A DNA stretch of 64,000 nucleotides from Kudoa neothunni (GCA_964304625.1 OZ199839.1:7976297-8040296); one strand, 5' to 3'. Shown: positions 4,012 through 55,303, counted from the first letter of the stretch. Notes: generated by a model from the sequence alone, not told the origin. Numbers and translations: made by a program.

Positions 4012-4017
4012 CCTTAA

Positions 4018-6294: not shown

Positions 6295-6298
6295 TTAA

Positions 6299-11071: not shown

Positions 11072-11077
11072 TTTTAG

Positions 11078-29610: not shown

Positions 29611-29849
29611 GTTAAATATGCCATATTAGCACCAATGTCATCAGTTAACTATTTAAATTCATCAAAAATCTGCGTATACAAAATTATTATTCCTATGGGA
29701 TTAATGAAATATTCAGCTGTAAAATATTTCATTGGATTATCAAAAGACAATGATGTAGTGATACTAGCCAAAATTTTTCTTTCCTTATTTATGAATATGT
29801 TAATAGATTGTTTTTAAATAGATTTATCAGTAAAATTTCAAGTGAAGTA

Positions 29850-30378: not shown

Positions 30379-33297
30379 ATGAAAGCTTTTGTCTACCTTA
30401 TGGGAATTTGTTCTTTATTATCATGTATATATCCAACTTCCAAAGAAATATTAATAATAACTTATAGCCCCTTATTTGCTTATATACACTCAAGGAGGTC
30501 AGGAAGATTCTCAAAATCCAGTTATTACTGAAGACTCTCTAACTTACAAACTTGTAAAAGCAGATAGTGATTTTAAGGTTAATTTAATATTAAATGGAAA
30601 TGGCTATCGCCCGGAGAAAAAGTGTCATATCAAAAAATCTAATGATGAAGAAACGAATCTTGTTGAAATAAGCGAATGCACTGGTAATAATCTCAGCACG
30701 GATAATAGCAAATGTGTTTGGACATGCTCAGTAAGTGAAAATAAGCTTGGTTTTGACAAGTTTCCTCCGAGGACAAAGTATGTTGCCGTCTTTACGGATA
30801 ATGAAGCAGGAACTGCAGAAACAAAAAATAGTGGTGGGGCTGTATTTGGATTAGAGTTTCGTAATTAAAGCATCTAGTATATTCAGTAAATTTTCTCTAG
30901 CATTATTGATCAATCCGCGAGTTACAATAACAAAGGAGGACAAAAAACTGAAATTTAGCACAAAAACTCGTAACTCGGTGAAATGTCCCGTATTTTACAA
31001 GGATGTGGAATTTAAAGAAGGAACATCTGGAAATACCTGCAATCATAATTGTGAAAGGGAAATGGAGTTTAATTTGATGATTCCATATTATGAAATGAAA
31101 TGCGATAATTATCCTAGTTTGTTTTACAACCTGCAAAATAAATACACCCTATTAAATTTTGATGTTTATCAACCACAATATTACGTGACCTATAGTTCGA
31201 GTGAGCCAACGAAATATATGCTAAAGTTTACAAACAAATTTCCATTTGAAATGTGTCTTTTCAGTATAAGAGATCCGTTAACAGAAATTACAGAGGCAAC
31301 TACCGACGATTACACATCTAAATGTGGTTCGACAGGGAAAAAATGTTATGCACCATGTAATAATGTTGAACTTGAGTTTTCGGCTTCCATTTCTGTTGTT
31401 GAAATATTGATTCAAACCAGGCACGTATCGTTGGTTAAAAGTGGCATCAAATATAGTGGATATATTCAGAAAAAATATGGTAATCCAAAAACATTTTAAC
31501 TATGATGATCTTCTTGTAGTTGTCATTGAAACTACTGCTCCTACCTTATTGTCGGAACATTCATCTACTGGTGTTAAGTTAAATGTTCCCTTGTTTCAAT
31601 CACAAACTAGTGTTAAATTTTCTGGATGTACTGTAACTTATTATGAAGCAGATAAACCTAAACCTGCTTCTGCTCCAACGGCAAAATGCGGAGGCGCCAA
31701 TCAAGATTGTGATGCAACGTGCACTCCCGCTCTAACGATTACAGAACTTGGAAGTGGAAAACCATATATTCTTGAAATTGCAGCAGGCAATACCGCTAAT
31801 CCTCCTCAAGATTTCAAAGAACATATATTCTTTCGAACAGGTAATTAATAGAAAACAAATATTTTTCAAAATAGGTGTATAGAGAAAAAAGGCACTTCTA
31901 CCTTTTCGGAAACAAAACCAATTGTGAAGGATACAAATGCATCAATCAAAGCAATAGATGTAATTGGTACAATTACACATGAAGACAAAACTTGTGCTTA
32001 CTATATAAGCCCTCATGGAAAGGATGTATATGTGTGTGCCATATGTGAAGATAGTTATCCTTGTAGGGGTTTTTGTAAGGATTCTCAAAAAATTATTGGG
32101 TTAATGCCCGGAACCGAATATGACCTAAAGATAGTTGCACATGAGGATTATGGAGAAAAAAAACATAAAATTACAACGAGTATATAAATAATTGACCTCG
32201 AATTAAATAACTAATTATGTTTCAAGCATTTTCAACGCTCATACTACAATCGGAATTTATAGAAAAGGGCTTCAAAGTGACAGGTGTACTTTCAACACCA
32301 CATCCTACAGCTGTTTGTCAATATAAAGTAAAAGTAAAGAAAGGGCAAGAATCCAAATTGGTCTATCAGTGCCCACCACCAGCTTCTACAACAAACACTG
32401 GCCCATCCTCCAATGCACCAAAAACTTCTAAAATAGCACTAGCTAGGACAACTAATGGACAACAACCACAGAACGTGCCGCCTTTAAATAAAAAAACCGG
32501 AATCACCCCATGCACACAACCTCCATTGTGCACTGATATTATATTCAATGAAGGATACGAAGAAGACAAGGAATATATAGTTTTGGTTACGGTTGTCGGC
32601 AGATCTGCAGAAACTACCATCAAAATACCCATAAGTAATAAAACATCTAATTCATATCGTCTTACTTTGGTTGAGTTTTTAAAATTATTAAAGATATGTA
32701 CATTAATTATTATTATACTAAATTTTAATTTAGATCCACAACCTTCCTCCAATAAGAATCCAATCAAATTAACTGTGGTGTTTACAAGAGAAGGCGAAAA
32801 CATAAAAGTTAAAACTTCTCTTCCTACAGGCGTTGATGAACAGTCATTATGTAAATGGGAATTGAAAAATTGGGATGATCCATCCAAACCAATCGTCCAA
32901 AAATGCATGGCAACTGGTGAACAAGGTTGTTCAGCTTTTCCATCATGCAAGGAATTTTCAATTTCAAATGTGGATAATACCAACAATTACCGTTTGAAGT
33001 TATACCATAGTACCAATAACAATATCTCTGGTTTTGTCGAGATCCAGAAAGGTAATTGATTAAATATTATTTGTCATTATTTCTTATATTTTGATTAGAT
33101 GACGAATCAAACAAATCCATGTAACATCAACTTGTTAAATTATAATTGATTTATTTTAGGTCAAAAAATACTATGTAATTATTGATGGAGATATTTTATT
33201 AATCAACTATTTTAGAATTATTGCTGTAGTAGTTCCAGTTCTCATCATCGTTGTGGGTGCGGGATTCTATTTCGGATACTGGAAAAATAAAAACTAG
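30379..33297 (+). CDS. Family A copy A3, intact 10-exon gene, 826-aa type-I membrane protein with tandem 4-Cys FN3-like modules
   Basis: Exons 30379-30424, 30468-30860, 30901-31479, 31520-31840, 31883-32179, 32227-32634, 32734-33051, 33099-33120, 33160-33174, 33216-33297 join into a 2481-nt open frame. FN3-like motifs IIGLMPGTEYDLKIVA and ITELGSGKPYILEI. C-terminal TM helix. Confidence 0.92.
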
Positions 33298-33596
33298 CTT
33301 TTTATTTATGAAGAATGCTTTCACAAATTGACTTACTATTTAGAGACAGTACTAATATTATATCATATGTATTAGTAATCCATCAGATTTCTTCATTACT
33401 TACTTTTAAATTCATAATTATTTAGTTTCATGAAAATTTATTTATTCGGAAATTGTATTTCTCTATTTTTTAATAAGGGAAATTAATATGATTTTTTCAT
33501 GATATGAATACTTTATTTAATAGTAATAATCAACCTTTTTGGATGTATTATTTTATCTTATTACTAGTTAGTTGCAAATCCTGATATCCGTTAACC

Positions 33597-34962
33597 CAGG
33601 GATTCTCAACCGGGGCAAAATATAAATGATATGGGGTAAATTAAATGACATCAAAATTAGGCAGGGTGAATTTTTGCATTATGGATTTGTGACGTATTTC
33701 CAGACTTCTCACGAATTATATTATTCAGGGAAATTAAACTCAATAAGAATTGGGAAAAAATTCTTAAATTATTTTTAGGAATAAGTTCTTAACATTTATT
33801 TATAAAATTATTCCCAGTCCTTTTTAACGCCTCGTTTATCTTTTAGTGGTGTAGCTTAATAATAATACTTAAAATGACTATTCTCATGATAAATAATATT
33901 CAAGTGTCGTTAGTTTTGACTATTTTTAATTATTTCTAGTCCGTAAGAGCGAAGGATTGGGGAATAATTAATTTGATTTAGCAATATCTAAAGAATAAAA
34001 TCTGTATACAGATTGTGGGTGAGTTGATGGGATTAAAAATTGTCATTATGCAAGCATACGTGTTTTTTAGGACCAGAATTTACCCCTCAAATAAACTCTG
34101 TTGTATCTGAACGAGTACAAAACCTCAAGGCGGCGTTTCTCAATTTTTTTATCGCGCCCCACTTCTTAAAAAGAAGTTAAGCATCTAATCTCTTTCAAAA
34201 GTATTGATTTTTTACTTAAACTGACGATAATTTTGAATAAAACTTCCAACCACATAAAAATTTGAAAGCAATTAATATTTACATCTTATCTCATTAAAAT
34301 TAAAATGTATTCGATCAGATCTGATTTAATTTATCGATGGACCTAATAAATGAACATCTTTAGTTGTTCATTCCGTCCAAAACAGCATCAAGTGAGACTC
34401 GTGGAAATCCAACCTTCATTAAGAAATACTTTGGTGTATACAGAGCTAATGGGCCGAAAATAAATAGTATAAATACAAAATCAATCAATATTATATAGGT
34501 TTAATCAAAAAAATGGATATATGATTCTAAATGAGACAAGATTGAGGTTTAAACCATTCTGATTCTATTCGGATAAGAGCACGTTAAATATTTTTATTCA
34601 TTTGTATATAATTGATCATTGCATTTCATATTTTTTATGATATTAATCGCCACTCAATAATCAGCAATATCGAAAATCGCGATATTGGCTTTAAAGTACG
34701 TCATACTGCCAAATTATCTCACCACTATCCATGTCACACCAATACTCAGGATTTTCCGCGTTTCGCCAGAGTGCTTCATTAAACATTCAAAAATTTCGAT
34801 GCCACATCAAAATTTTTTCACGTCCCACCGGTAGGGCGTGGAACTCATGTTGAGAAACTCAGCTTTAAGGTAAATATGAATTTGGCTTTCAAGTTAGAGG
34901 GTAATTTTCGATTTTTCATCAGACTCAAGGGGTAAATTTGAAAAAATGGTTGAGAACCTCTG
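33597..34962. mobile_element. hAT-like MITE with nested MITE (34131-34862); duplicate of 2647-4011
   Basis: Same TIRs. TSD cgttaacc / ccttaacc. Confidence 0.75.
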
Positions 34963-34968
34963 CCTTAA

Positions 34969-37291
34969 CCCATTCCGGGTTTTCATCCCCTTTTCAGCCC
35001 CTCATTGTTGTCTCTCTAAGAATGGTAATAATTCGTCGATGAGTATTATTTCAGTATATATCACGTAATTATCCATTAGGAATGTAATTAAAAATTAAGA
35101 TCCAATTATAAATTTGTATCTTTCGAGATTACGTACTATACAATAATTATGGTATACTGGGGTAGAAAAAGAAGACTAATTACTTAAAAATAGAAAATTT
35201 ATAATTCAAAAAGATTAGATAAATGATATTGTTTCAAAATTTGTCAAATCGTCATTGGGGGAAAGAAACATAAGCAATATATTGCAGTGCCCAAAAGGGA
35301 ACGAAGAACCACCAGCGTGCAAGATTTCAATTAGTCTGTTACTCAGCCTTGTACTTACAACGTTATAATGAGATACACAAATTTAATTAATTTCGTCCAT
35401 GATAATTAAAATGATGATGGTTTTCTAAACTCCATTGATTTTGTGACGTTACCTCCAGATAATGTTGATATTTTGGCTGATGAAGAAGGTCCCTTTATTT
35501 CAAGAGATTGTGACAACATTGACATTAGAACCGTCCCAGAAATATGCGGTGCAATAGAACTTTCTCGTATATTCATAATGAACCATTAAATGATAATATT
35601 TGTGCCACATAGTGTAAAATATCTCAATCAGATGATTCATCTGTAATTACCACTGAATGCCTACCAGTTCCTCAAAATAAATATACTATTATGCACGATG
35701 ACTCAGTCATTAGATATGAATCCTACGAAACATTCTTAAAATTTTTCGATGAAAATTTGCTCTTACATATTGTTAGAGACATATAATTACGCACAACAAA
35801 AGAATGATCACACGTTTCACTTAACCATAAAAGAACTTGAATCTTTTATTGGTATTTTATTATTATAGGGCTACAATCGATTATCTCAGCAACATATGTA
35901 TTGGAGAGTGTTAATGGATTCTGGGGTTGAAATCGTAAAATGGTTGATGACCTATAAAAGATTCTAGTTGATAAAACGACATCTCCACTTTAATTATAAT
36001 TCAAACACGATACAGACGATAAGCTGTTCAAGACCAATAATTCGAAAATTGAACGAAAATTTGGATATTTCCACGAAAACTTGTCTGTTGATGAACGTAT
36101 GGTTCTATATAATGGTCACCATTCCTGAAAAATGTAAATAAAGGGAAAACCCGACCGTTTCGATTTCAAGCAGTGGGGTTTGCCACCTTCTGATGGATAT
36201 GTGAATAGTTTTATTGTATATACAGGTATGCCTAAAATATACAACAAGAATTTTGGCCTAAGTGGAAGCATCGTACTAAATTTTGTCGATGAGCTAAATG
36301 ATAGAGGAATTTTCCATGTCTACTTCGACAATTTCTTCACCTCTTACAAATAATTTGTTGGATTAAAAAGAAGAGGTGTTAATGCTACTGGAACAGTGAG
36401 GATGAACCGAACGTCGAACCGTTCCTTGATGACTCCGTAATTAATAAGTAAAAACCACCGAGGCTATCATGAATATTTCAAATATTCTATGACTGAATCA
36501 ACTGTAGTCAATGGAAAGATACGAATCCTGTTACTCTTCTTAGTAACTCGCTTACTGTTGAAACAATCCAGAATGTGAAGCGTTTCTGCTGAACAAAAAG
36601 GCGCCATGTATCGATCGTGCAGCCTCAAATTTGTCGTACGTACAAGTATATGGATGGCGTTTATACCGTAGACAATTCCTTATTTTTCTACAGAATATGA
36701 ATTCGCTTGAAAAATTGGTATTGGTCTCTTTTTACTAACATGATATCGCTCGCAGCAGTTAATTCATGAAGAATGTTTAATTACCAAAGACAAGAAAAAA
36801 TCATCTTATTAAATAACGTTAGATACATCGCAGCTAATTTGATCAATATAGATGATTCTGAAAAAAACCCCCTCGATCATCCATCGTAAATACTCATGCT
36901 GCGTCATTGTGTAGTCGACCTATGATGAGCACTAATGCTGAGAAAAAGAGACGATGTGTTGCATATAAAAAGAAGACCATCTACTTTCGTCAAGATTATC
37001 AAAATTATATTCGTGTTAGATGCTCGATTGATTTTCATATTCAAAAGTAGTTTGCTCTCTTATCGATATAACACCGCTGATTTTTCGCACGTTTTGTGAC
37101 ACAACGTTTAATCAGAAAATCGCACGTCGGTTGATTTCCATTCCCTTTTCGGCCTTTTGGTAATTTTGCAGTTTTCCAATAAAAATTTAATTTTTAATTA
37201 ATAATAATTTAACATAACAATTAAAAAATTATTTTAAACGTATATTTCCAATTTTAAGGAAATTAAAATATTGGACCCGGCCCGGAATCGA
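34969..37291 (+). mobile_element. Degenerate piggyBac; duplicate of 4018-6294
   Basis: TTAA|CCCATTCCGGG ... CCCGGAATCGA|TTAA. Same broken transposase. It retains an RIRLKNWYWSLF segment deleted from the first copy. Confidence 0.88.
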
Positions 37292-38478
37292 TTAATCCTT
37301 CCTGCCCGGGGTGGGGTATTTGCCATACCCCTAAAGAAATATTTTTTGTTTTACTCAAAGCACGAGAATTTTTTCGCTGTAGAATTTTTAGAATGCTCCT
37401 ACAAACTTATAAAGCTTTCATTTGAGCAAAAAGATTGTATTCGAAATTTTATAAACTAAAAATTATACATTTCTAAAAATCGAGAGATAATTATTTCATA
37501 TATATCACTAATTTATATTTCTATTTAATATACACTTTAACATCATTTAATAATTAAAATTCCTATATTACTAACCGGAAAAACATGTTTTCATCAAAGT
37601 AAAACTGATTGGGTATTTACCAAAGTTAATTCGATAATACTTTACTAATCTGGCGGCTTGCGCGCAGTCCTAATTTGAATAAAGTTTTTACTTGTTGAGG
37701 TAACTTCTTTAATTGAATTAATTAAAAAAACTTTTCAAAAATTAAGGAAGCTTTTAGGATCACATTTAGTATAGGCCCCTCATCCTCAAATGCATAATGG
37801 GGATTATTGTTTATTACGCCATCACGTATGAGACTAGACGAAAAATTTGTTTTTAAAATTGTTGAGGAAATTTTGATTCGCTACAGATGATGATAAAATA
37901 TAAGATTATTCGAGACCATTTTTGACGAAAAAAAAATTGTAAAAAAACACTAAAATTGGGGTGCCACACGCTCCACAAATACCCCTAAGTTCAGCCTATT
38001 GTTGTTGCTATTATTATCGCGTGTTTAACCCTCCTTCATTTTCAAATAGATATCAATTCTTTAATTTAAACCAACTCGATTTCCGCAATTATCTATAATA
38101 CTCACGCACAAGTGGATCCAAACCAGGGGGAGACTTAATCCATTTATTCCGATAAAATAGGAAGGGCCAGGAACTTGTGATGTTTCTCATGAGCAACAAT
38201 GTTTGCTAATAATTATGTATTCTTATGTTACGACCATATTGATTGATTCATTCATTCATGTGGTTTAAATCATTGCTTGGTTGAAAAATAGGGGGATTGG
38301 TTGGTTGTACGCTCTTGTAGCTGCACTTTATTGTATTTGCAATATTATCGTTTTATTTATTACAAAGGATAGAACAATTTCTCAATGTTAACGTCTATTA
38401 ATATATATGTTCATGATAGTTTACATTATGTAGGCTCCGAAGGATTTAAAATTGACTAAGGCATATTTTTGCTGGGGT

Positions 38479-39566
38479 GGCTAACGTTTACCACATCCCA
38501 ACACTCGGGTTTTTTGGTTACCTAGGTCATTTGGCTCTCAATAAACCACGAATGCTTCCCGCTATTTATTCAACTGATAATCTAGATGAACTAAACTTTG
38601 AAGAAATAATATATTTCAAAGATAGGAAGGATGAACTGTTGAAAATTTTAATTGAAATTGGACTTTTTATTAGAGAGGGAATATAAAATTGTGGATGTAG
38701 CATGATCATGGCGATTCGACCACGATATTCAGATGGATACAGTTTCAGATGTCATAATCGTGGTTGCCTAAAAGAACTATCTGTCAGATATAATAATTTC
38801 TTGTACCAATCGAAACTCTCATATCGCATTTTAAAAATTATATATCTGTGGTGAAATGAAATGCAGAGCCAACGTAATCTCATGAAAGAATGCAGACTAG
38901 AGTCCACCAGGGCAAGATACGACTGGAAAAATTTCATGCGAGGCTTATATCTGAGCTATTATATCATGAACCCCACTAAAATAGGCGGACCCGGAATAAA
39001 GGTGCAAATTGACGAACGTCAAATTTGCAAAAGAAAGTTTCATGTTGGAAAGATTTTGCAAATTCAAAGTGTATGGATTGTTGGAGGTGTTGATGAAAAC
39101 GGAGAGGTTTCCATGGTTCAAACTGAAATTAGAGATCAGAGGACATTAGAAGGGATTATTCTTCAATATGTTAATCAGTGTTCAATAATACACACCGATG
39201 GATGGCCAACCTACGAAAACTTAGAATAGATTGGATACCAGCATGACGTAGTGATTCGTAAGTATGAATTCGTCAATGCCACTGGCATTCACATTAACAG
39301 AATTGGAAGTTTGTCGGTAGCTTTAAACGTAAGTGTAGGAGTATAACAAACAAGAAAAAAGAGATGATTTCATCCTATATTTCTGAGTGGTGTTTTAAGA
39401 GAGGGCACAAAAATTAAATATTTTCTGAATTTATAAATGTAACAAAATTAGTTTTTAATTTTGAGGGTTAAAATGTACAGTTTTCAGTCTTTATGTTTTG
39501 CGTGGCATTTTGTTGATATTCGAGAACGAACAATCCCAAGTGTTGCGGATGTGGTAAACTTTAGCC
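38479..39566 (+). mobile_element. Merlin transposon pseudogene; duplicate of 7491-8577
   Basis: Same TIRs. Motifs KIGGPGIKVQIDER, WIVGGVD, IHTDGW. Same stops. Confidence 0.9.
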
Positions 39567-40582
39567 TGACGGGTCGTGAGCGCTAAGCTTAAGAATAATA
39601 TTGCCCAAATGATGGGTCATGGACATTTGGAGAGAATCAAGAATTTTTGTTCTTTGAAAGATAGAATAGATAAAACGTCATATTATGAAATAATGTCCAA
39701 TGGGAAAAATAGATAACCTAAAATCCTCAATTATTTTAGCTGAAAATCTCCATCCTCCTTAATATGATTTTGGGTAATGAAGAATTCATTATGATGGCTC
39801 ATAATGAAATGAGAACTACATATTATTGCAAAACATTAAAAAATTAAAGTAAGACCTCGATATAGCGTAATTCATGATTTATCGGTGTTTTTCAACATAA
39901 AAAGTTCAACAAATAACGTTAACTATTGCGAACGGTGTTGGGGAAATATCCACCTCCAAAAATTCGTCTTTTTCGCGTGTGCAAACCTTCTGATTTTATA
40001 ATGAATCTTCTGTTTACATTTTTTAAATAGGGAGTAATCACAAATATCTTTAAAAATATCAGTCTAAAAAAATCAACCAAAATACAGCGTTGGCCATTAT
40101 CGTAGCGAGCGCGTAACTTTACTCGTTCTTTTTTTATGCTGTATTCCTCTAAGTTTCCACATATATATACAACTTTGAGATTATTATTATTATCTCCTAT
40201 CTAGTCTCGTTATAGCATTTGTGTGTAAAAACCATATCTAACTCAGTAGTCAGTAATAATAGATTTAGATAATTTGTTTGAATTTAAATTAACTTGTACC
40301 CGGACAGGACTCTATATATTAAAGTTTCGTTGAACAGAAATGTCAAAACCAACAAACTTTAGTTTATTTAATTTTCTTGGTGGTTTATTTTTTTAATGGT
40401 GCAAGATATTGTGATATTACTATGACCATCATAATATTTTCCATATTTATAATACATTAGAAACTTATAAATTATTTAGTAAATTATTGTACATGGACAA
40501 TACAAAAACTGGAACAATATATTTGTAAATGCAAGAATTACTTTTGTATAAGAAAGTTATATCATGATCCTTAGTTCTAGGC

Positions 40583-41848
40583 CAGTGTGTTCCCTACGGG
40601 GGATGCGAAGAGCCATCGTTAGGGGGGTGGGAGTCATTCAAGAATAAATTTAACAATTAATCTTAGTTTATTCATTTCGTATTGTTCGTTAGCCCCCGTT
40701 TAAATCATGTAAGGACGTAATGCGTATGGTAATATTTCTGGTTGTTTCGATTCAAAATGGGATTTGATAATTTATTTAATTTATAATTCATTCTGTTTGA
40801 TTCTACGAAATAGCGCAGTAAGGTAATAGTTTATATTATGCATGTTCAGCGTACAAAATCTAACTATCGCTATTTTCATGTAAAATAGTTACTTTGATAT
40901 CTTTCAAAATAACATATTTATACGCTCTAGCTGTACTTAGGTTGTCAGCATTTTTATCTACTTAGGAATAAACTATATCCATAAAAATAAAACCACGATG
41001 TAGTTATAACTTTGTCTCCTGTCTAAATTTGAGATCTATCATTTAATTACGTTGTTTTTATTGTTACATTTTAAGTTTTACTTTAAAATTTTTACCTTGC
41101 CTCTGATATAAATATAAGTTAAATTGTTCTTGAAAGTATAGGTAAAACAAGGATCAAAGCATTCATTTATATACATCAATAAACGAAAACAAATTTTAAC
41201 AATATATTAGTTATTTTATTCGAGTATATTTAGAAGGCATATTTTTTGAATTTTCGGAATTTTTCTTAACCTACTGCCTCAAAATTTATATTAAAATATG
41301 ATTCAATATAGAATAAGGAATTCGCTAGGTTTTTCTATACAAGATGGTATATGAGACAAGCTTATAGACTTCATTATATGCAAATAATAATTATCGGAAT
41401 TCATTAATCCCCGAAAACGATTTTCATGTTTCATATTCCTACAAAATGTCCTGCATTGAATTACTGATGAAAACTCAGCGGAAGTTAGAGAACCGCCCGA
41501 TCAAATAAATGCTGAATAACAATTGATTTTGAAATAATGTTTCTTGTGAACAATACGAATCGGCTATTTTTATTTGACTCATTTCATTTTTACCTTTAAG
41601 CACAGGACTTATTTAAGCGACCATACTGTTTATAGTTCAGTATTACGTTTATATTTATTTTTGACGTCTAATATTTTGGAATAATTGTAATAACATTATT
41701 TATTACTTTACATAAAAATGGTATATATAAGCGGGAATGAATAATAGCTCCAATCATTGAGTGTTAAATCATGAGGAGCGAAAAGATAATGTCGTCCATT
41801 TTCGATTATACATAGCAAGTTGAGTTAACCAAAACATTTTGGTTTTAA
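40583..41848. mobile_element. Truncated duplicate of the 9579 hAT MITE
   Basis: Left TIR CAGTGTGTTCCCTAC. The right part was removed by a ~1.1-kb deletion relative to unit 1. Confidence 0.6.
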
Positions 41849-42034
41849 AGTAGAAAAGTTTGTAGTTTTCGTTTTAATGCTATTTATCGGCTCTCAATTG
41901 TATTGTTGAAATGTTATTCAGTCTTATAGTTCGTGCTTCAATTACCTTGTTTCGTACCTATTGACATCTAGAGTCAAATTCATTATTATAATTTCTATTA
42001 AAATTAATAACGCCATTATAATTGAGAACCAAAA

Positions 42035-44296
42035 ATGTTGGTCATTGCATTGTTAATCCTTTCTCTCTGTTACAATGGTAAAATAAGCCGGGAGTGGGAT
42101 TATCCATAATAGATATATTTAGCCCACTCACACAAATACTACGTTCAACGAGATCAAACCGAATTAGAGGATACAATCCATCTAAAACTTGAAGGAGTTT
42201 CTGGAAGTAAATGCAACGTTCAATTGTTGGAAAGAAACGAATTTTTCTATCACTATATTGGGAGTGAATCTGAAGGAAAACAACTTAAGGATGTCCCTTG
42301 TGTCGGAAAATACACTATTCTAACTGGAGCTGCGTTCCCATTTTATTATGTACAGATAAGATCCGAATATGCAACTGAAACTCTTAAAATAATCCATAGT
42401 AATTCAATTTTTTGAATATTTTTTCTTAATTTTCTTGTAGTCACTGACAGTATTCCTCAAACTCAATTTAAAGTAAACGAAACCTCAATCGAATTCACCA
42501 CTAAAAATGTCTGCAGTCATCCTCAAACTTGTAAACTAACAAGTGGTGACAAAGTCCTGGATGAGTTCACTCCAACCTCTGAAACCGAGTGCAACACTGA
42601 AACCAAGCTCACCGGATTTTTTGATTCAATTGGCGATTCAGTCGAACTCTCTTGTGGTATCAATCAGCCAAAAATACACATGTATAGAAAAAATAATATG
42701 GCCATGGAGTTCAGTCCATTGGACAAACTTCCCTATCACATTGTTAAAGGAGATGCGGATAATAAGATAAAAATTGTTTTCGACGAAGATATGCAAGATG
42801 AAATATGCAAATTTGAAATTAATAAAAAGGATGGTGGAGCTCTGATATCAAAGTGTTCTGCCCCAACGAGTGAAGATAATTGTTATCAACTCTGCACTGA
42901 CGTTGTAATGGACTTAACATTTAATAAGGATTCGGAAAAAGATTTTAAAGTTAAAGTATCGACTAGAAATCATACAGGAGTAGAGAAAACTTTAAGAAGT
43001 AAAATCCTTGTTTAAATAATTTTATTTAAACGTCAATTAGTTGACAAAAGTAACCTAGAAGTTACTCCGAAAGAAACTAATGCAACTCTTTCTATCGCGG
43101 CCCTTAAAGATACAGATTTGACCTCTGCATCTTGTTCCATCGAGTTGAGAAAGCAGGAATTCCCTAAATTCAATATTGGCGTGAAATGCAATGCCGATTC
43201 GAAGACGCTATGCCCTACAAATTGTGAAAATGTTACCATTCTTGATCTCGAGCCAAACACAAAATATATCGTGAAAGTAACTTATACTAAAAATAGTGAA
43301 AGTACTCCAACCTATATTTCAGAAAAGTTATTTAAAACAGGTAATAAATAAAAAGTAATTGATCTAAAATTTAATTAAGCTGACTACAATATAACGCAAT
43401 TGCCTGAGATTAAAGCATATTACGAGCACGTAAAAATGACTGTAGCACCGAACGTGGCTCTGTTTGACAGAGTATACTGTAAAATTCAACAAAAAATGGT
43501 GGGCGAAACTGCTTTCAGCCCATCTGAATGCGAAGAATCGGTTGATTGTTCAGGTTTATGTGGACAACCACTCACTATTAAAAACCTTTTTCACGATACT
43601 GAATACGAATTTAAATATTTATTTGGAAAGTACGTTAGTGACCTTGATAAAAACAAGGTGACAGTATCGACAAGTAATGTACAATATTAATCTCTCAATA
43701 ACATTTATTAAGTTGCAACGCTTCAAAAAATCAATGTTACCCACACATGGAATAACACCGATTTGATAGTCACAACGACAATGGAGCAGATGGACCCAGA
43801 CCAAATTTGTGATTTTACATTTGCCCAAATAGTAGATGGAGTTGTCAAATATACTTACGGATTATATGATAAAACTACTGGATGGGAGGGGAAATGCAAC
43901 CAAGAAATAACCTTTTACAACACTGCTTCCTACAGAAGGGGCTCAATGAAAGTACAGGCCAGATACGTTAGTGAGCCGATCGTTGTGAGCCTTTGGGCTG
44001 GAGGAAATGAGGATAATTTTGATCCAAACTTTCCAGAAACTGGTAAACAAGGTAAATAATATTATATAAACATTAATTATAATCCATTTTAGGCACTTCG
44101 AATAGGTAAGATAGTTTATGTTAGAGTATTTAATTAACTACTAACTTTAATTTAGCGCTAATGTTGGTGGAACCAAAATTCTGTAATATTATCTGTTCCC
44201 ATACAGCTCTAATGATGATTTAGGTTGATTGTTGGTGGCGTTTTAATGGCACTGATGGTTTTCGCTATTGTTTTCTTGGTTTTGACAAAGAAATAA
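42035..44296 (+). CDS. Family B copy B2, intact 9-exon gene, 640-aa type-I membrane protein with 4-Cys FN3-like modules
   Basis: Exons 42035-42077, 42123-42398, 42441-42998, 43041-43340, 43380-43673, 43713-44051, 44093-44105, 44156-44182, 44224-44296 join into 1923 nt without stops. Motifs TILDLEPNTKYIVKV and LTIKNLFHDTEYEF. TM followed by TKK. Confidence 0.92.
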
Positions 44297-44697
44297 ATCA
44301 TATCTCATTATTCCATTGAATGAAATATTATTTGAATTTTTAGTATAATTAGCTAAGAATGAGATTTATGTTTGTGTTAAAATGATATATATTGGCTAAT
44401 AAATGTTCGTCGCATTTTATATAAAGACGCGCATCAATTACAATAGTAAATTTTAGTATATTATCAAATGTTTGTACCATTTGAATAAAGATAAGAATAA
44501 AATTAGTGTCACATAAGATTTAATAAATTACATTAGCTTTGTACTATTTCTTTTCTTAAAAATGAAAAATAGAGTTATTTATGAGATAAATAAGCATAAA
44601 TATAATTTTTTTGTCACATTAAATCTTATAGTTTTTAAAAATCTTAAGAGTATTTTATAGGTATGCTAGTAAATAGGAGGAATCAAATGTTTTTTAA

Positions 44698-46937
44698 CCT
44701 TCCAAGTAAAATGGGGTATTTTTATACCCCAGGCCTATTTAATATTTAATTTTTTACCTCAAATCTAAGTCTAAAATTTTTTATATTCCGTCTAACCTTT
44801 TGACGTTATATAATACATATTCTACCCGATACAATTTTTTTTTTGTAAAATAAAATATAACGCCAAAATACCCTCCAAGTAAAATTGGGGTATTTTTACA
44901 CCCCACATTTTTATTGATCTAAATTATTCCAAATACAAAATAATATTTTTTGGGGAAATTTGATACAATTTTATCAACAAATAGTACTGGTCATATTGTA
45001 ACGCACATGCGCTTCAGGACGTTAGGAATATGGGCTCGAGTGAGTATGGCGGCAGCTGCTCTGATACTGATTCTTCTGGCCTGGATTATTCCTTTACATG
45101 TGATACATCATCAGATAATTCGGAAGTTGAAACCAATGCTCCATCTGACTCTTTAATAGATAAGAATGGAACCTTATGGACAATTGAAAAACCCTCGACT
45201 TCTAGAACTGCGGCCGAAAATATTTTGACCAGTCGTGCTGGTGTTTCATCCTTCGTTTTGCAGAATGTAAATGAAATTCTTGATACGTTTAAAGTGTTTT
45301 TTTCGTCAGGAAATACATTATTTAATTTTAAAACATACAAATCAATACGGTAAACATTTTTTTGGTGATGCTTGGAAGCAATTAGATAGTGTCGAATTCG
45401 ATGGATTCATCGGATGTTTATTGTTAATGGGAATATTTGACGATAATCAACGACCAGTCAATGAATTGTTTGGGTTAGAAGAGGGAAGACAAGTTTATCG
45501 TGACCTATTTTCTTTAAATAGATTCCGACAAATCAAGAGAGCTCTTCATTTCGATGATTTCGAAACACGAGAGATAAGAAAAATGTCAGATAAATTCTGC
45601 CACATTCGTGAACTCTGGGATATCTGGGCCGACTCATTTATCCAGAGTTTTCGACCTTTTGAGGATCTTTGCGTCGATGAGCAACTCGTGGCTTTTAGAG
45701 GTCGTTGTAAATTCAAACAATATATGCCAAAAAAGCCTTCAAAATATGGCCTAAAGTTTTTTTTAATAATTGACCCAAAGTCAACTTTTGTTTGCAATGC
45801 AATTGTCTATTTGGGAAAACGATCTCAAAATGATACGAGGGCTGTGAATGTTGGGAGGAATATTGTTTTAAAGTTAGTGGAACCATTTGAACGTTCTGGT
45901 CGAAATGTCGTATGTGACAATTTTTTCACGTCTATTGAGTTAGCGGATGAATTGTTACAAAAAAAACTTACGATTGTTGGAACGATGCGTTCAAATAAGA
46001 GGGAGATACCACCATATTTGAGACCAGATAAAACGACTCCTCTTCATTCATCTCTTTTTGTTTTTAATAACAAAAAAATGATGCTAAGATATCTGCCTCG
46101 CAGAAATAATCCCGTTTATATGCTTTGTTACTCCTCAACAAACACCCAAATATCAACAGAAAGGCCACTAAAACCCGATGTCATAATGCATTACAATGCA
46201 GTAAAAGGCGGAGTTGATACGATTTCCAGATTATTGGCAGCAATAAATGTGAGACGAATATCTTGTCGTTGGCCGTTAATTGTTTTCTTTAACATGGTTG
46301 ATATCAGTCTGATTAATGCGTGTTGTATATACAAAAATTTATTCCCTTCCTCAAAATTATTCCGGAGGGAATTTTTGAAAATGATGGCAACCCAATTGAC
46401 ACATCGACTGCTTTTGAGACGGAAACAAAATATGACAGCTAGTGAAGATTCCTCTGTTATAATTGGACAAAATAGTTACGGGAGATGTCGATTTTGCGAT
46501 AGGAAGTATGATAGAAAACCAAAATAAAATGCGACGTTTGTGCTTCATCTTGCCGCAAATTCCATTCCAATCATATTTGTTTTATTTGTTTAAACCGATA
46601 ATTATATGTCAATTTTTTCTTATTCTTATTCTTTTGTTCGTTCATTTAACAAAATAATTCCAATGCTGCTTAAAAGCTTTCCTAAAATAGAATCTTAAAC
46701 GTATTGTCAATAAACACTCTACTTCTGCAATGTGATCAATTTTGATTTGTGCGCGTGCGCTATACATGCTTAGCTAGAAATATTGGTCTATGATTTCAAG
46801 TTTAATCGATAAAAATACTTCAAAATTTTCAAAAATAATTATTTTCAAATTCTTAATCGTTTGGTTTAAAAAAATGTGGGGTGTAAAAATACCCCAATTT
46901 TACTCGGAGGGTGTAAATTTTGCAGTGACTTAGAAGG
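44698..46937 (+). mobile_element. Young, nearly intact piggyBac transposon
   Basis: TTAA TSD (44694-44697, 46938-46941) with the empty site at ~14759 in unit 1. Terminal CCTTCCAAGT / ACTTAGAAGG. A ~40-bp internal inverted repeat at 44871-44912 / 46871-46911. Confidence 0.95.
45030..46601 (+). CDS. piggyBac transposase (DDD) with two homopolymer frameshifts
   Basis: Acidic N-terminus. Catalytic motifs CVDEQLVAFRGRC, VCDNFFTS, KGGVD. One extra T at 45297-45303. One missing A at ~46522-46525; restoring it completes the Cys-rich tail CRFC..KCDVC..C..H..C..C. Confidence 0.85.
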
Positions 46938-47291
46938 TTAATACTTTTATTGAAACGAATATTTTACTATTATAAATTTGTTTATATGATGCAATATTGA
47001 TAAAATGAAATAAATTGATAACAGTTATATTTATATTAATCGTTTGATTTCCTGGAGTTTTGTAGTACTCAGATTACCTTTTATCAAATGAAGAATTAAA
47101 ATAAATTTATATTAAGATAAAAATTCGCGACAAATTTTTATATGTAATAAATTAATGGGGATAATTAAAAAACCACCAATATCAATAAAAGTTAATTTTA
47201 TGGGGCTTGTGCAAGAAATATTTTATTACTTGGAATTTATGAAGATGAATAATAAAGCTATTATATTTGACTGTGATTACTTTTTACTTAA

Positions 47292-47540
47292 CCCTTAAAG
47301 GATAACCTTCAGTTCCATGCGCCCATCTTCATATTATTTTGTTTATAAATTTTGTTGTTATGCATGTTATATTTTGTGTATATTCGTCAGAATTTCATCT
47401 ACATTTTTAAATAAGCATTATCTACCGACCGACATAATAAAATAAGTTAATGGTTTGGCGAAATTACACAAATTATAACAGGTTTTACAACAAAATAATC
47501 GGGAGGTGGACGCGCGAATCCAATGGTTAGCCGTTAAGGG
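47292..47540. mobile_element. 249-bp TTAA-specific MITE (piggyBac-type)
   Basis: TIRs CCCTTAAAGGATAACC / GGTTAGCCGTTAAGGG. TTAA duplicated. Empty site at ~15102 in unit 1. Confidence 0.9.
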
Positions 47541-47957
47541 TTAATAAATATTTAATTAATTATCTACAATTTATGGTTAATAATTCTTGATTTTATTTTT
47601 GGATATTGGATCACTAAATTTGAACCTAAATCAAAAATATATATTCATAATATATCAAATAGCCATTATGATCTTAAATAATTATCCCATCAGATAAAAA
47701 GAAATAACAACGTTCACTATTGGTTTGAGTCACTTTATATATAATGATGTATGAATAGTTGGGTAGATACAAGTTATTTCCTGTTATTACCCACAATAAA
47801 ACGCAAATTATCCCCGCAAAACTACATATGTAAAATCATTCCTATCGCATCATAAAAAGATTATGCATATTTTTGTTAATCAACTTTTTAATTGGTACAT
47901 GAATTAATGATACTTAATTTAGTATTTATATGTATGGAATATTCTCATTTTTATATA

Positions 47958-50777
47958 CAGTCGAACTCCGTTTATCCGAAAATCGCGCTATCCGAATGAT
48001 TGTTTAAAATTTATTTGAAAATCATGTAGATTCTAAATAAAAAAATTGCGTTTAAGCAAAATTTCAGCAACCGCATTCCGAAACCTCTTTTTGCTGGAAT
48101 TTTCGGATAAAAATGTCTTGATGTCTGGATTAGTGTCAGGTTAAAATGGCACATACAGTTATTTTTTTGATACATACATTCGGTATTTATTCAATTTAAG
48201 TTTATGTTTGATTATCAGAAATAGCATAACGTAGATAATTAGTGTTTTATGTTCAAAATGCAACCATGTTCATGATGAACGAACAAATGTTGGGTAAATA
48301 CAAATTCCCTTATATCTTTTCATGGGTCATATAATATAAAAAATGGAATTTATAGGATTGCTTAATCACAAATTAGCAGTAACTTCATACGACCAATATA
48401 TCCACGGAGTTGACGCAATTCAACAATGTTCACACATCTGTATTATTCCCATAACATCACCACTTTTAGATCTTATTGAGTCGTAATAATCATTAACCAA
48501 TATAAAATTGTTGGAATAAGGCATGTCTTAATTAAAGAAGAAATTCTAAATGTCGTTATGGAGAAGTCTGAGAAAATACTCCTCATTGTCACTTTGTTAT
48601 TCATACCATCATTATTAGTACAGCTCGTAATGTCCAAATAGGGAAGAAATTATAAAAAAATTAATAACAATAATCCATTTTTTAGAATATAGAATGTATC
48701 ATTTTAATATGGCGCGGTGGCGTTGAGGTGGCACATATCGACAATACGCGTGCGCACACTACGTTGGATCTAGAACTACTGTACCTTAAATTAATGTTTC
48801 CACGTTGTCTTCACTAGTACAACCTATATAAAATAGGCAACCGATTTTGCATAATCCCTCCCGGACCATGAAAAAAATGTGCGAAATCGATCCAGAACCG
48901 ATTTTACACACGTTGGTACATGCGCAATCTCCATTTAAATCAGCGCTTCCTAACTAAAACTGGACTCGCACCCATTTGCATACGATAAAGTGTAACTGAC
49001 TTAAAATTTATCAAAAATTATTTTTAATTTTGATTGGATCTCGCACCATTTAAGACCAAAGTTCGCACCCCCAATTGGGAGCCCCTAATTTAAATATTAC
49101 ATTTTTAACACTTAAAAGTAAAATTTTAATTCTTAATCCCCGAGGAAACATGTTTGGATAAAGATGAGATGCAATATAATAAACTAGACTATATATTCTA
49201 ACATTTGAAAAAAATTTATTTTCGATTGTTTAATATTTTTCCACATGAAATCGTATAAGTCGTTCTCAAGATCTGAAAGAATTCTTAATCGATCATTGTC
49301 GTTGTTGAGAAAGAATTTTTTAAATTCGCTGATGGAATCAATAGCCTCTTTGAAATTCAGAACAGGGGTATCCTCAAATTTATCTTCAAGCATTTCCTTA
49401 TCAGATCCATCACCATTATTAAACAAATCTACTAAATTATCCCTACTATCTAAATCTAACGTAGAATGACCATTATATAGGCAAAAAATTCCATCCTCCT
49501 CCTGATGAAACATCTCCTTTATTTCACCATTAATTTGCTCTGGGCATATAATATCATTGCTTTCTCAATTAGATGCATTATTTATTATTAAATCCTCGCT
49601 TAGTGATATAGAGGACAATTCATCAATAGGAAAATAAGCTTTTTTAAAACAATTCCTAATTGTTTCTGGAGTAACCATACCCCAAGCATCCCTTATAAGA
49701 AACATTGCCTCTATTATGTTCGGAGGGATGGGCCAATACCTGTTTCAACACGAGCAATATATCGCTTAATCATAGCCCTTTTTTAGGCAGATTTAAACGG
49801 ATATATTATCCCCTGTTCAAGAGGTTGTAAAACACTCGTGGTTTTTGGGTGAGAAAAACCATTCTTATATTGCTCAAATTTTTTTTACAATGGCAGGATG
49901 TATTATCAAGAAACAATAACACATGCTTATTCCTTTTTTCAAATAATGGATTAAGCTTGGTTATATATCTCAAGAATACATCATTATTTATCCAACCTTT
50001 ATTATTGTTTTCATATGACACAGGAAATTTTTTAATATTCTTAAAACAACGAGGGTTTTTATGTTTGTCGATTATTAGTGGTTCGAGCTTTTCACCATTC
50101 ATTGAGGCACCTAACAAAATAGTTACTCGCTTCATAGATTGTTCGGTCCCCTTTAAACTCCTCTTTGATGAAACTACAAAACCTTTACCTACAAAATAAA
50201 TCAAAACGTTAAAAAAACTACATATACCTCTCTGTTGCTGGTAGAATAATGCAGATTCGTCGATATTATATGTACAATCTGAATTATAATTTTCACATGT
50301 CTTTAAGTTGTGGAATCCACTCTTCAACGACTGCAGAATCCACATCTGCGGCTTCGCCATGGAAATTAATTGTTCTTAGGTTAAATCGCTTTTTAAAACC
50401 CTTAAACCACCCAATTGTCACACTTCTGGCTTCTTATTTTCAACATAAAGCTCAATTCTTTTGTTGATGATATCAGAGGGGGTGATTTCGATTTTTTTAT
50501 CCCTCATCAAACAGATCAAATCACAAATACCTTGATCATAATTAATGCTTGATACGTTATGAATGTTCTTTCTTTAATTTTATGCTAATCCTCCTTCAAT
50601 AATAGAAATCATTTTCTCCTTCTTACGAAGAATCCCATTTAGGGTGGCAATATTCGTAATTTGGAAATGTTTTACTGTTGCTATTTGAGAATGTTTAAAG
50701 GGTAAACTTTCGAAATACTTTATTATTTTGAATTTCTCTTCCAAAGTTCTAACAACTTTAGCATTAGTTCTTGCCAT
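47958..50777 (-). mobile_element. pogo/Tigger (CENP-B-like) transposon, transposase pseudogene at 49184-50777
   Basis: TA|CAGTCGAACTCCGTTTATCCG TIR. HTH start RTLEEKFKII. Motifs GWLRGFKKRF..FHGEAADVD, YNIDESALFY, KRVTILLGASMNGEKL, LFLDNTSCH, LQPLEQGII, C-terminal KQSKINFF. Frameshifted. The second TIR was not found, and the link between this TIR and the ORF is inferred. Confidence 0.82.
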
Positions 50778-50819
50778 CTGTATTATTTAATTGATATCAA
50801 ACAAAAATTTAATCAACGA

Positions 50820-51290: not shown

Positions 51291-51299
51291 GCTCTTCTC

Positions 51300-51838
51300 C
51301 TTTCTTATATTGGATGAAGACTGCACCAATGTGGATATTAAATAGAGACAATTAACTCTCGAAAACTCAAATCTTTTTTCCATAAATGATCCCGACAAAT
51401 TTTGATTCGATGTATCAGAAAAAAGAATTGGCGATGTTCCTAAATATCCATTAATTTCAAAATTAATGATGAGCTTGCTCTCATTACCTTTCTTCTTCTG
51501 CTTGTTCCGAAAGAATAGTTTTCCAATTGAACATAATCAAAACGAAAAATAGATCATTATTGAAGATCGAAACATTAAACAACTTGATTTATTCTAAAAG
51601 TTTATTTTATAATAAACTTTGTACAAAATGGAATCTGCCTGAAAATTTAGTAACATCGTTCATAGAGAGAAACCTTTACGACGATAATTGTAATTACACA
51701 ATTTCATTTTATATAAATTAAAAAACATTTTAAATAACTACATTTTTTTTACGTTTTAATCTCTTTTTTGCGGCGATTAACTGTTGATACATTTTACTTG
51801 ATTTCGGTACATTTTTCATAAATCTGCTGACAACCCTG
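51300..51838 (+). mobile_element. 3' remnant of a hAT transposon (dimerisation domain + TIR)
   Basis: DPDKF*..KYPLISKLMMSLLSLP.SSA..ER..QLNIIKTKNRSLL. Ends in GCTGACAACCCTG. Confidence 0.75.
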
Positions 51839-52079
51839 GCTCGAGGGGACTCAACGGGTCGTGGGCACCTCGAACCCGATTCCTATTTTAGTGCTCACGG
51901 CCCGTCCGCCACTGTATTATTTAATGATATAATTTAAATAAAATGATTGTAGAATAATATCGTTGTATAAATTCGAAGGGACAAAATTTTTCCCTGCAGC
52001 GCTCGCGTGAAAAGTTCGAAAAATCGGTTACCTACTGTAGCACGCTCCCGAGGAAACCCGTAGTTTTCGTGCTAGTATT

Positions 52080-52437
52080 ACATAATTTAATAAAGTTATC
52101 AATGTCAAAAGAATCACATATATTCTTTTCTTTTTGACTGTATATATGTGAATAGATATATATGGTGTGGAATAAATTTCAGGTCGGATTTCCTTCTAAT
52201 TATAAAGAATGTGTCTAATTTCCGTGATATTCCTTTGAATTAATATTCAGGATAATAAATTATTATCCTTCAAAATATTTGTTAAGATCAATTAATATTT
52301 CCGAAATATTTGTATTGATGTTTCATTGGGTTTAAAGCGAACATTAATTCTGTGTATATATGTATTAATTATAATCCGGTTAAAATTTTGATTTTTATAT
52401 TGAACGAAAACTATCGTTATTTCTTTTGAAAAATATA
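52080..52437 (+). promoter_or_regulatory. Conserved upstream region of A4
   Basis: Homologous to the A2 and A3 upstream regions. Confidence 0.5.
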
Positions 52438-55303
52438 ATGAAAGACTCTGTTTACGTTTTAAGAGTTTGTACTTTTCTGGCGTGTATATACACACAAACG
52501 GTCCTGGGAGGTGCTTCAAATCCAACTGCTACTGAAACCCCTTTAATTTATAAACTTGTGGAAGAGAGCAATCAATTAAACGTTAATTTTATATTAAATG
52601 GAAATTATTATACTGGGGACAAGAAATGTCATATAAAAAAAGCTGATGATGATGGCACGAACCTTGTTGAAATTGCTACATGCCCCGGTGATGCTTATAC
52701 AACAGATGGTGAAAAATGTGTTTGGACATGTTCAGAAAGTACCAATAAGCTAGCTTTTGACAAGTTCTCCCCAAAGACTAAATATATCGCTATCTTTAGC
52801 GATAATGACGCAGCGACCGCGGCTTCGAAAAATAATAATGGGATTGTATTTGGATTGGAATTTTGTAACTAAAGGATCTAATGTGTTCGGTAAATTTCCT
52901 TTAGCATTACTGGTGAATCCGCGAGTTTCAATAACAAGGGAGGGGAAAAAACTGAAATTGAGCACAAAAGCTTGTAACTCGGTGAAATGTCCCATATTTT
53001 ACAAGGGCGTGATATATGATGAGGGAACAACTCAGAGAAGTGGCATTGCAAATATTGAAAGTGAAATGGAGTTTAATTTGATGATTCCACATTATGAAAT
53101 GAAATGCGATAATTATCCCAGTTTCTTTTACACCCTGCAAAATAAATACACTCTTTTTAACATCGATGTTTATCAACCACAATATTACGTGACCTCTAGT
53201 TCGAGTGCTCCAACGAAGTATATGCTAAAATTTACAAACAAATTTCCCTTCGAAACGTGTCTTTTCAGTATAAGAGAAGTGCCAACAGCAGGTAGTAACG
53301 ATGGATACACATCGAAATGTGGTTCAGCAGATAAATGTTATGCGCCATGTAATAATGTTGAACTTGAATTCACAGCATCCAAGTCTGTTGTTGAAATATC
53401 GATTAAAACCAGACACGTACCACTGACCATCAATAACATCCCTTATATTGGGTATATTCAAAAAAAATATGGTAATCCAAAAACATTTTAACTATGATAA
53501 TCTTCTTATAGTTGTCATCGAAACTACTGCTCCTACCTTATTGTCAGAACATTCATCTACTGGTGTTAAGTTAAATGTTCCCTTGTTTCAATCACAAGCT
53601 GCTGTTAAATTTTCTGGATGTACTGTAACTTATTATGAAGCAGACAAACCAAAACCTGCTGACCCTGTTCCTGATGGGGCGAAATGTGGAACTGGTAAAA
53701 CAGACTGTGGCAACGAGTGCACGACTGCTCTAGAACTTACAGGACTGGATAGTGGAAAACCATATATTCTTGAAATTGCAGCTGGTAATAACGCTAGCCC
53801 TCTTCAAGATTTTAAAGAACGTGTATTCTTTCGAACAAGTACTATAATCGAAAAAAATATTCTTTTAAATAAATATATAGCAAAGAAATCTGATCCAACC
53901 TTTTCTGAAACAACTCCAACAGTAACGGATACAACCGCGTCTGTTAAAGCAATAGATGTAACTGGTACAATCACAAAAGACGACAAAACTTGTGCTTACT
54001 ATATAAGCCCTCATGGAAAAGATGTATATGTGTGTGCCATGTGCGAAGATAGTTATCCTTGCAGAGGTTATTGCAAGGAGTCTCAGAAAATTATAGGATT
54101 AATGCCTGAAACCGAATATGACCTAAAGATAGTTGCACATAAGGATTATGGAGAAAAAAAACATAAAATTACAACGAGTATATAAATAATTGATCTCGAA
54201 TTATATAACTAATTATGTTTCAAGTTTTGTCAACGCTCACACTACAATCAGAATTTATAGAAAAAGGCTTCAAAGTGACAGGTGTACTGTCAACATCATA
54301 TCCTACGGCTGTTTGTCACTATAAAGTAAACGTAAAAAAAGGGAGTGAATCCGAGTTGGTCTACCAATGCCCACCATTGGCTTCTACAACAAACACTGGA
54401 GCAACCTCTAAAGTATCCAAGACTTCTAAAATAGCACTAGCTAGGACAACTAATGGACACCAACCACAGAACGTGCCGCCTCCAAATAAAAAACCAGAAA
54501 TCACTCCATGCACACAACCTCCATTGTGCACTGATATTATATTCAAAGAAGGATACGAACCAGACAAGGAATATGTAGTTTTGGTTACGGCTGTTGGCAG
54601 ATCTGCAGAAACTACCATCAAAATACCCATAAGTAATAAAAAATCTAATTCTAAATTCATATCGTTATATTTATATTTAATTTTTAAAATTATTAAAAAT
54701 ATGTACATTAATTCTAGTTATACTAAATCCTAATTTAGATCCACAGCCTACCGCCCACTAATAATCCAATCAAATTAACTGTGGTGTTTACAAGAGAAGG
54801 CGAAAACATAAAAGTTAAAACTTCTCTTCCTACAGGCGTTGATGAACAGTCGTTATGCAAATGGGAATTGAAAAATTGGGATGATCCATCCAAACCAATT
54901 GTCCAAAAATGCATGACAACTGGTGAACAAGGTTGTTCTGTTTTTCCATCATGCAAGGAATTTACAATTTCAAATGTGGATAACACCAACAATTACCGTT
55001 TAATGTTGTATCATAGCACGGATAACAATATCACTGGTTTTGTCGAGATCCAGAAAGGTAATTGAATAAATATTATTGGTCATTATTTCTGATATTTCGA
55101 TTAGATGATGAATCAAATAAATCCATGTAAAATAAAATTTTTGAATGCTTATTTATTTATTTTAGGTCGAAAAATACAATGTACTTATTGATAATGATAT
55201 CTTGTTAATCAACTATTTTAGAATTATTGCTGTAGTAGTTCCAGTGCTCATCATTGTCGTTGGTGTGGGATTCTATTTCGGATACTGGAAAAATAAAAAC
55301 TAG
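52438..55303 (+). CDS. Family A copy A4; lacks intron 1; 1-nt insertion at ~54754-54756
   Basis: MKDSVYVLRVCTFLACIYTQ runs directly into domain 1. The other introns are conserved. accgcccactaa vs accgccactaat in A2 shifts the frame at the start of the last domain exon. Confidence 0.85.

Follow-up and report, generated by a model that had tools for sequence, protein, structure and literature searches.

How can neighbouring copies of one gene come to be related to each other differently in each of their parts? The question is raised by a stretch of 64,000 nucleotides from the fish parasite Kudoa neothunni (GCA_964304625.1 OZ199839.1:7976297-8040296), referred to below as the window. A repeat scan of the window finds four copies, A1 to A4, of a 2.9-3.4-kb unit, three of them direct and one inverted. 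An initial annotation of this DNA proposed that the four genes are segmental mosaics of each other, generated by recurrent short-tract exchange. Our analysis leads to a broader answer: the mosaics are very probably the product of recurrent ectopic homologous recombination, with gene conversion as its main mode, acting across a large and new family of surface-protein genes. Coordinates are given in the numbering of the window (C2:7976297-8040296), unless prefixed C2.

The gene copies and their family

The four copies are placed as follows.

<1-2347, plus strand: copy A1, its 5′ end cut by the window start, with exons E3-E7, the micro-exons and the transmembrane (TM) exon inside the window
16469-19335, minus strand: copy A2, inverted, exons E1-E7 all open
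30379-33297, plus strand: copy A3, every exon open
52438-55303, plus strand: copy A4, lacking intron 1, with E1 and E2 fused

Open reading frames (ORFs), GT..AG sites and conservation between copies give a gene model of seven main exons, two micro-exons and a TM exon, with introns of 40-99 nt. Copy A3 has the following exons, all on the plus strand.

30379-30424: E1
30468-30860: E2
30901-31479: E3
31520-31840: E4
31883-32179: E5
32227-32634: E6
32734-33051: E7, followed by the micro-exons and the TM exon, which ends ...YWKNKN*

The start codon of A1 lies 568 nt upstream of the window, as read from locus L008. Two of the copies are broken in frame as assembled, A1 by a base missing at about 723 in exon 4 and A4 by one base too many at 54753, where exon 7 begins; there is also frame trouble in several exons of L006, L009, L014 and L018. 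These single-base breaks may be those of real pseudogenes or consensus errors of a high-fidelity (HiFi) read assembly at 7x. Intron 1, 43 nt long in A1, A2 and A3, is missing from A4 (52438-52864) and its twin L010, where the frame stays open from the signal-peptide exon through exon 2. Intron presence is therefore variable within the family.

Compared with the whole genome, A3 yields 45 matches, 20 of which are near full length at 77-100% identity. Fifteen of these 20 fall between C2:7.957 and 8.170 Mb, in a cluster of about 220 kb. In total, the family of this multi-exon gene, which is 2.9 kb long, numbers some 40 related loci, at least 20 of them copies of nearly full length. Copies beyond the window were analysed as loci of 5.7-5.9 kb. 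In the identity matrix, the nearest relatives of the four genes all lie outside the window: L015 for A2 (95%), L010 for A4 (97%), L002 for A3 (86%), and L011 and L009 for A1 (87%).

Conflicting groupings among the four copies

The four copies share 267 parsimony-informative sites. Of the three possible pairings, A1 and A3 against A2 and A4 (13|24) is supported by 156 sites, A1 and A2 against A3 and A4 (12|34) by 67, and A1 and A4 against A2 and A3 (14|23) by 44. These sites are strongly clustered, since the pattern switches 74 times along the gene compared with an expectation of 151.9 ± 6.8, and none of 10,000 permutations gave a count as low. They form the following blocks, given in the coordinates of A3 on the plus strand.

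31129-31205: A1 and A4 against A2 and A3, 6 informative sites, 2 of them synonymous
31428-31450: A1 and A3 against A2 and A4, end of exon 3, 8 sites
31455-31626: A3 and A4 (also L010), from the end of E3 across intron 3 into E4, 25 sites including 8 in the intron
32978 to beyond 33599: pattern 13|24, 99 sites

All the groupings quoted in the initial annotation are borne out by the exon translations and by the DNA. The contrast in mid exon 3 between FYTLQ..NID..VTS (A1, A4) and FYNLQ..NFD..VTY (A2, A3) is the first block. The second holds the contrast at the end of exon 3 between HVSL.KS..KY (A1, A3) and H.PLTIN (A2, A4). The exon translations also contain GDN in A1 and A2 but GEN in A3 and A4, and the grouping of A1 with A3 against A2 with A4 at the 3′ end and flank is the 99-site run. 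Intron 3 and the start of exon 4 call for a qualification. A3 and A4 do share this block, whose counterpart in A4 is 53447-53618, but the opposing 'A1+A2' is no real pair, as these two copies are only about 76% alike here. The true clade is A3 with A4 and L010, as A3+(A4,L010), at a bootstrap of 100.

The pairwise homoplasy index (PHI) across the gene is 0.470 for the four copies, against 0.644 ± 0.013 in permuted alignments (z about -13). When the 3′ block is left out it is 0.543, against 0.658 ± 0.013 (z -8.6), and for the 15 copies of the cluster z is about -49. Further, silent sites occur in all three partitions (19 + 9, 19 + 20 + 73 and 17 + 1 + 4, as synonymous, intron and flank sites). 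Because the blocks extend to synonymous, intron and flank sites alike, they reflect an exchange of DNA and not convergent selection.

Recombination across the family

The conflict extends to the whole family. In maximum-likelihood trees of five gene segments from the 20-copy alignment, each segment rejects the trees of the other four, with log-likelihood differences of 96-645 and a p-value in the approximately unbiased (AU) test of at most 1.7e-4. In sliding windows, the nearest neighbour of each copy changes every 75-600 nt among a dozen partners. A GENECONV-like test finds that 43 of 190 pairs carry a longer identical run than any of 2000 permutations produced (P <= 1/2001). The longest identical runs join A3 with L002 (described below), L005 with L003 (641 nt) and L014 with L005 (378 nt); the run between A2 and A4 has 189 nt. 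A sliding-window or GENECONV-type check for incongruence had been suggested when the mosaics were first proposed; with this check made, a single congruent tree is rejected in every cross-segment AU test. The statement that all three pairings occur, and that no single duplication tree can account for them, is thus borne out by the clustered partitions, the PHI values and the AU tests.

Where the partners lie is a separate matter. When all 19 other copies are allowed as donors, a minimum-cost copying model builds each window copy from 5-15 segments and leaves 1.7-5.3% mismatch, compared with the 12-14% left when the donors are restricted to the other three window copies. The idea that the four genes are mosaics of each other consequently needs to be divided: the mosaics are real, but their partners are mostly outside the window. 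Direct links within the window are few in this model. A1 and A3 are linked from about 32700 into the flank, and A3 and A4 over 159 nt around intron 3 (31470-31626, 159 columns, 7 mismatches). The link between A2 and A4 runs from about 32720 into the flank, with a further 146 nt in exon 3.

Individual tracts, twins and long blocks

Particular exchanges can be followed in the following stretches.

28889-29989, plus strand: 5′ flank of A3, 1.1 kb with 0 differences from that of L002
31949-32591, plus strand: A3 tract 100% identical to L002 (C2:8050092), a run of 661 columns (661 nt) with 300 family-polymorphic sites, covering E5, intron 5 and E6
33374-34687, plus strand: 3′ flank of A3, 0 differences from the 3′ flank of A1 (2424-3737), about 1.3 kb
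16517-16700, minus strand: A2 tract of 189 nt, 100% identical to 55072-55255 in A4, the two in opposite orientations
15733-20330, minus strand: 4.6-kb unit common to A2 and L015, comprising A2 and short flanks

Between its three identical stretches, A3 is 5-34% diverged from both L002 and A1. In the 246-column patch that holds the A2-A4 tract, 22 sites separate A2 from its twin L015, and at 21 of them A2 has the letter of A4. The proposed exchange with the inverted copy is therefore supported, by a 189-nt tract of complete identity within a gene whose twin differs there. In another patch, A2 matches L003 over 159 nt with 1 mismatch. The flanks of A2 and L015 show 0 differences over 0.4 and 1.1 kb, and the gene between them carries 7-8 internal patches of 5-56 differences each (variance/mean 7.6, dispersion P = 5e-45). 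The twins A4 and L010 are likewise patchy (dispersion P = 1e-42).

Longer blocks are also present. An A gene, other DNA and a gene of a second kind, B, lie in a direct but patchy duplication (1-15588 and 30947-48027) that exceeds 15 kb and includes the identical 3′ flanks of A1 and A3. It alternates blocks of 0% divergence with blocks of 5-13%, an alternation which suggests that whole cassettes, too, are affected by long tracts or unequal crossovers. Short-tract exchange is accordingly upheld only in part. There are tracts bounded on both sides that include silent sites and introns, but the groupings at the 3′ end and flank are of kilobase scale, and what A1 and A3 share there is due to segmental duplication, unequal crossing-over or long-tract exchange, not to short tracts.

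One simple segmental duplication of 50 kb was also considered and is ruled out, because the homology between A2 and L015 stops after 4.6 kb.

Diversity along the gene

Nucleotide diversity (pi) declines along the gene, with values of 0.27 for E2, 0.24 for E4 and 0.06 for E7. It is 0.19-0.27 in the 5′ half, with a synonymous diversity (pS) of 0.3-0.45, and 0.06-0.11 in the 3′ half; pS drops from about 0.4 to about 0.1 in the same direction. Introns are as diverse as the exons next to them, whether diversity is high or low. The ratio of nonsynonymous to synonymous divergence (dN/dS) is 0.25-0.65, below 1 throughout except in one window, and highest in E2 and E4 (0.5-0.65). There are no stops at ungapped codons in 15 copies.

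The encoded protein

The product is predicted from its sequence to be a type I membrane protein, with a signal peptide, ectodomain modules, one TM helix and a six-residue tail, YWKNKN. The ectodomain has six beta-rich modules of 100-190 residues, one per exon, with 4-8 cysteines each. Cysteine content is 3.8%, and there is a single CxxC motif.

Protein searches and fold predictions were made exon by exon, not on the spliced protein. Against the Pfam model of the fibronectin type III (FN3) domain (PF00041), the best score was 21.5 bits, below the curated cut-off of 25 (E = 2.7e-4), and the FN3_DSCAM C-terminal model gave 23.9 against a cut-off of 39. An AlphaFold2 (AF2) model of exon 4 is all-beta with six strands, where an FN3 beta-sandwich has seven, at low confidence (predicted local distance difference test, pLDDT, 52, from a shallow family alignment); the model of exon 3 has a pLDDT of 38. 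The top Foldseek matches of the exon 4 model in the Protein Data Bank (PDB) are nearly all FN3 domains or monobodies, with TM-scores of 0.5-0.68, none of them significant (E >= 0.13). Where any assignment is possible, the modules may be FN3-like.

A HMMER scan of 1.8 billion representatives returned just 14 matches, most of them fragments without a name, 70-270 residues long, out of metagenome assemblies, and the ESM Atlas gave no usable match. Two short metagenome contigs (L021, ENA ERZ28624939; L022, Logan SRR33849685) carry fragments 30-63% identical to exons 4-5 of the family. Relatives of the family are thus present in other samples, presumably in other myxozoans.

A probable mechanism for the mosaics

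Along each gene, ancestry changes at intervals of 50-1000 nt. Inside the genes, copies that are otherwise 75-87% identical share tracts of 60-660 nt without a difference, and in the flanks such identity extends over 1.1-1.3 kb. Many of these tracts have diverged sequence on either side, and some join copies in opposite orientations. We propose that the bounded tracts are non-reciprocal gene conversions, and that the kilobase-long blocks ending inside genes arose by unequal crossing-over or long-tract conversion, which would duplicate whole cassettes. In the 3′, membrane-proximal half, conversion would have been frequent enough to homogenise the gene. The 5′, membrane-distal half would keep old, diverged lineages and reshuffle them into new combinations. 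Judging from the predicted protein, the likely outcome is a parasite surface with a repertoire of ectodomains that differ combinatorially.

This process is the germline evolution of a multigene family, and it bears no sign of a programmed or somatic switch. The suggestion that exchange generates new variants is a reasonable inference in this sense, although no functional or programmed role is demonstrated here. All copies read look full length and have their own signal-peptide exon, and so do not suggest silent donor cassettes. The A3 unitigs, moreover, are free of read-level heterogeneity. We think it very doubtful that new ectodomain mosaics arise during infection, with the frame-broken A1 and A4 as donors, as a system of myxozoan surface variation. 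In a milder version, the same repertoire may be evolving in the germline under immune or host-binding selection.

Weighing the alternatives

Could the genes instead be chimeras from misaligned crossovers, built by unequal crossing-over and segmental duplication alone, with no short-tract conversion? Such a history would fit the blocks of 100% identity that begin or end within genes and extend for kilobases into the flanks (A3 equals L002 on its 5′ side and A1 on its 3′ side), the duplication of more than 15 kb that carries A, other DNA and B, and the arrangement of the copies in tandem arrays. However, it does not provide for internal tracts bounded on both sides, such as the 7-8 patches of A2/L015 and the A3 tract at 31949-32591, for the 5-15 segments needed per gene, or for the alternation of 0% with 5-13% divergence within the duplication. 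Further, the A2-A4 tract is shared in opposite orientations without inversion of the intervening DNA, and we consider this history improbable. We give even less credence, indeed next to none, to convergent or parallel selection, in which a few favoured residues per hypervariable position were fixed independently. The raised dN/dS in E2 and E4 and the variable loops between invariant, cysteine-anchored blocks are what it would draw on, but synonymous, intronic and flanking sites obey the same blocks, identical tracts reach 661 nt, and dN/dS is below 1 in all but one window.

An artefact of assembly or sample, in which a low-coverage meta-assembly joined paralogues, haplotypes or co-infecting genotypes, deserves attention because the assembly has a k-mer coverage of about 7 and went through purging of haplotypic duplication that had been seen in it. 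In addition, unitig depth in the flank identical between A1 and A3 is 8.3, not clearly double the unique depth of 6-7. Yet in two runs of the source sample the unitigs that tile A3 agree with it at every covered base, at a depth of about 6-8 in its unique parts. One unitig branch, a loose end at 31984, lies at the edge of the A3-L002 tract. The switches are far below HiFi read length, so that each gene should fit on single molecules, and the copies, being 13-25% different, are not collapsible. Chimeras within genes are accordingly judged unlikely. In 15 copies most exons are still in frame, and the same pattern recurs across every family pair. An artefact is in our view a very unlikely source of the mosaics, although copy number and the twin pairs could be affected by haplotypes. 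Clusters of this type are where a 7x assembly and gene prediction from protein hints are least reliable, and both copy number and gene models need checking with long reads.

Several further points weigh against ectopic recombination dominated by conversion. Site-permutation nulls are blind to the 5′-3′ rate gradient, which makes run lengths in the conserved 3′ part look more significant than they are, an effect that leaves the tracts of 661 nt and 378 nt untouched. In the hypervariable 5′ half, three tracts of A3 have a best partner genome-wide that is only 88-94% identical, so that either the exchanges are old or the partners are missing from the assembly. Neither the direction nor the non-reciprocity of events is readable from one genome. 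The HiFi reads behind the assembly reach a k-mer coverage of about 7, and the purging of haplotypic duplication was done by hand (PMC12239612). The twins A4/L010 and A2/L015 could, with such coverage and purging, be uncollapsed haplotypes or a second parasite genotype. Two further raw-read runs carry the same species label but yielded none of this organism's reads, the label most likely being that of the host, so that read support comes from unitigs of the source sample. Where expression and function are concerned, no RNA reads map to K. neothunni (PMC12239612).

Genomic setting and neighbouring features

The published K. neothunni genome, recovered from HiFi reads of yellowfin tuna, has 40.2 Mb, three chromosome scaffolds and a circular mitochondrion; its GC content is 30.4%, its introns measure 49 nt, and it has a single (TAAACC)n telomere (PMC12239612). 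The assembly contains 40,260,978 bases, in 3 large contigs and an 18.2-kb contig with COX1, in which no tRNA was found. Its HSP70 is animal-like, with no more than 78% identity to any named sequence. A single (TAAACC)n array is present in the genome, at C2:12039536-12040069 (about 530 nt), in agreement with the one telomere published. The A cluster lies about 3.9 Mb from this sole telomere array and is thus internal, not subtelomeric.

Other features of the window were noted beside the A genes.

23123-24233, 29110-29613 and 56282-57381: another repeat between A genes, copies 73-89% identical
12667-13414 and 42602-43349: sharply bounded stretch of the neighbouring B gene with 42-46 substitutions per 250 nt
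44697-47541: 2.8-kb insertion, in the second copy of the large duplication only
45271-46527, plus strand: intact piggyBac transposase ORF (PF13843) of 418 residues, inside this insertion

On either side of its diverged stretch, the B gene has just 5-11 substitutions per 250 nt, a patch pattern like that of family A. The first copy of the duplication has no insertion between 14762 and 15102, which places the insertion later than the duplication. The best match of the piggyBac ORF is 64% identical and unnamed; named matches, at 35-41%, come from fish, a tardigrade and insects.

Comparison with known systems

Myxozoans are economically important parasites of fish, and Kudoa species spoil the flesh of tuna and other fish. 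A large, clustered family of membrane proteins whose hypervariable outer half is reshuffled by recombination is an obvious candidate for antigenic variation in this group. According to a preprint on Sphaerospora molnari, antigenic variation has been seen in a few myxozoans, but without a known molecular basis (10.64898/2026.02.11.705288). Should mosaics arise during infection after all, they would represent the first molecular basis for myxozoan antigenic variation, and the first such system in an animal parasite.

The var and rif genes of Plasmodium, VSG of Trypanosoma, msg of Pneumocystis and VSP of Giardia are large, clustered families of surface proteins with hypervariable ectodomains, segmental recombination and frame-broken members. 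The Kudoa family resembles them in its clustering, its hypervariable ectodomains, its segmental recombination and its broken copies among intact ones. It differs in that its cluster is internal, as described above, and in a fold that may be FN3-like. Unlike systems of the VSG, vlsE or pilE type, in which silent donor cassettes feed one expression site and genes switch during infection, it gives no sign here of using an expression site, of expressing its members in a mutually exclusive way or of switching them somatically. Nor does it resemble the Giardia-type VSP-like proteins reported in another myxozoan, Sphaerospora molnari, which have more than 10% cysteine, CxxC or CxC motifs in several places and, behind the TM helix, a basic C-terminal signature (10.64898/2026.02.11.705288). 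The Kudoa protein has 3.8% cysteine, one CxxC and the tail YWKNKN.

Among other cnidarians, alr1 and alr2 of Hydractinia are clustered Ig-like transmembrane receptors with chimeric alleles attributed to recombination (PMC3342096). They share with the Kudoa family the cnidarian lineage, type I proteins whose modules are, or in Kudoa may be, beta-sandwiches, a hypervariable membrane-distal part and clustering. The Kudoa tail, however, has 6 residues and no signalling motifs, and no relation in sequence or fold was seen, none having been tested for. Colony fusion is not known in this parasite.

The Kudoa literature searched describes nothing resembling this family. The closest likeness in process is to interlocus gene conversion and concerted evolution, with which it shares incongruent trees, bounded identical tracts of tens to hundreds of nucleotides, introns homogenised together with exons, and exchange between direct and inverted repeats. 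In contrast to concerted evolution in general, one half of the gene is homogenised here while the other keeps its deep lineages and is only reshuffled. The process is already known; the gene family is new.

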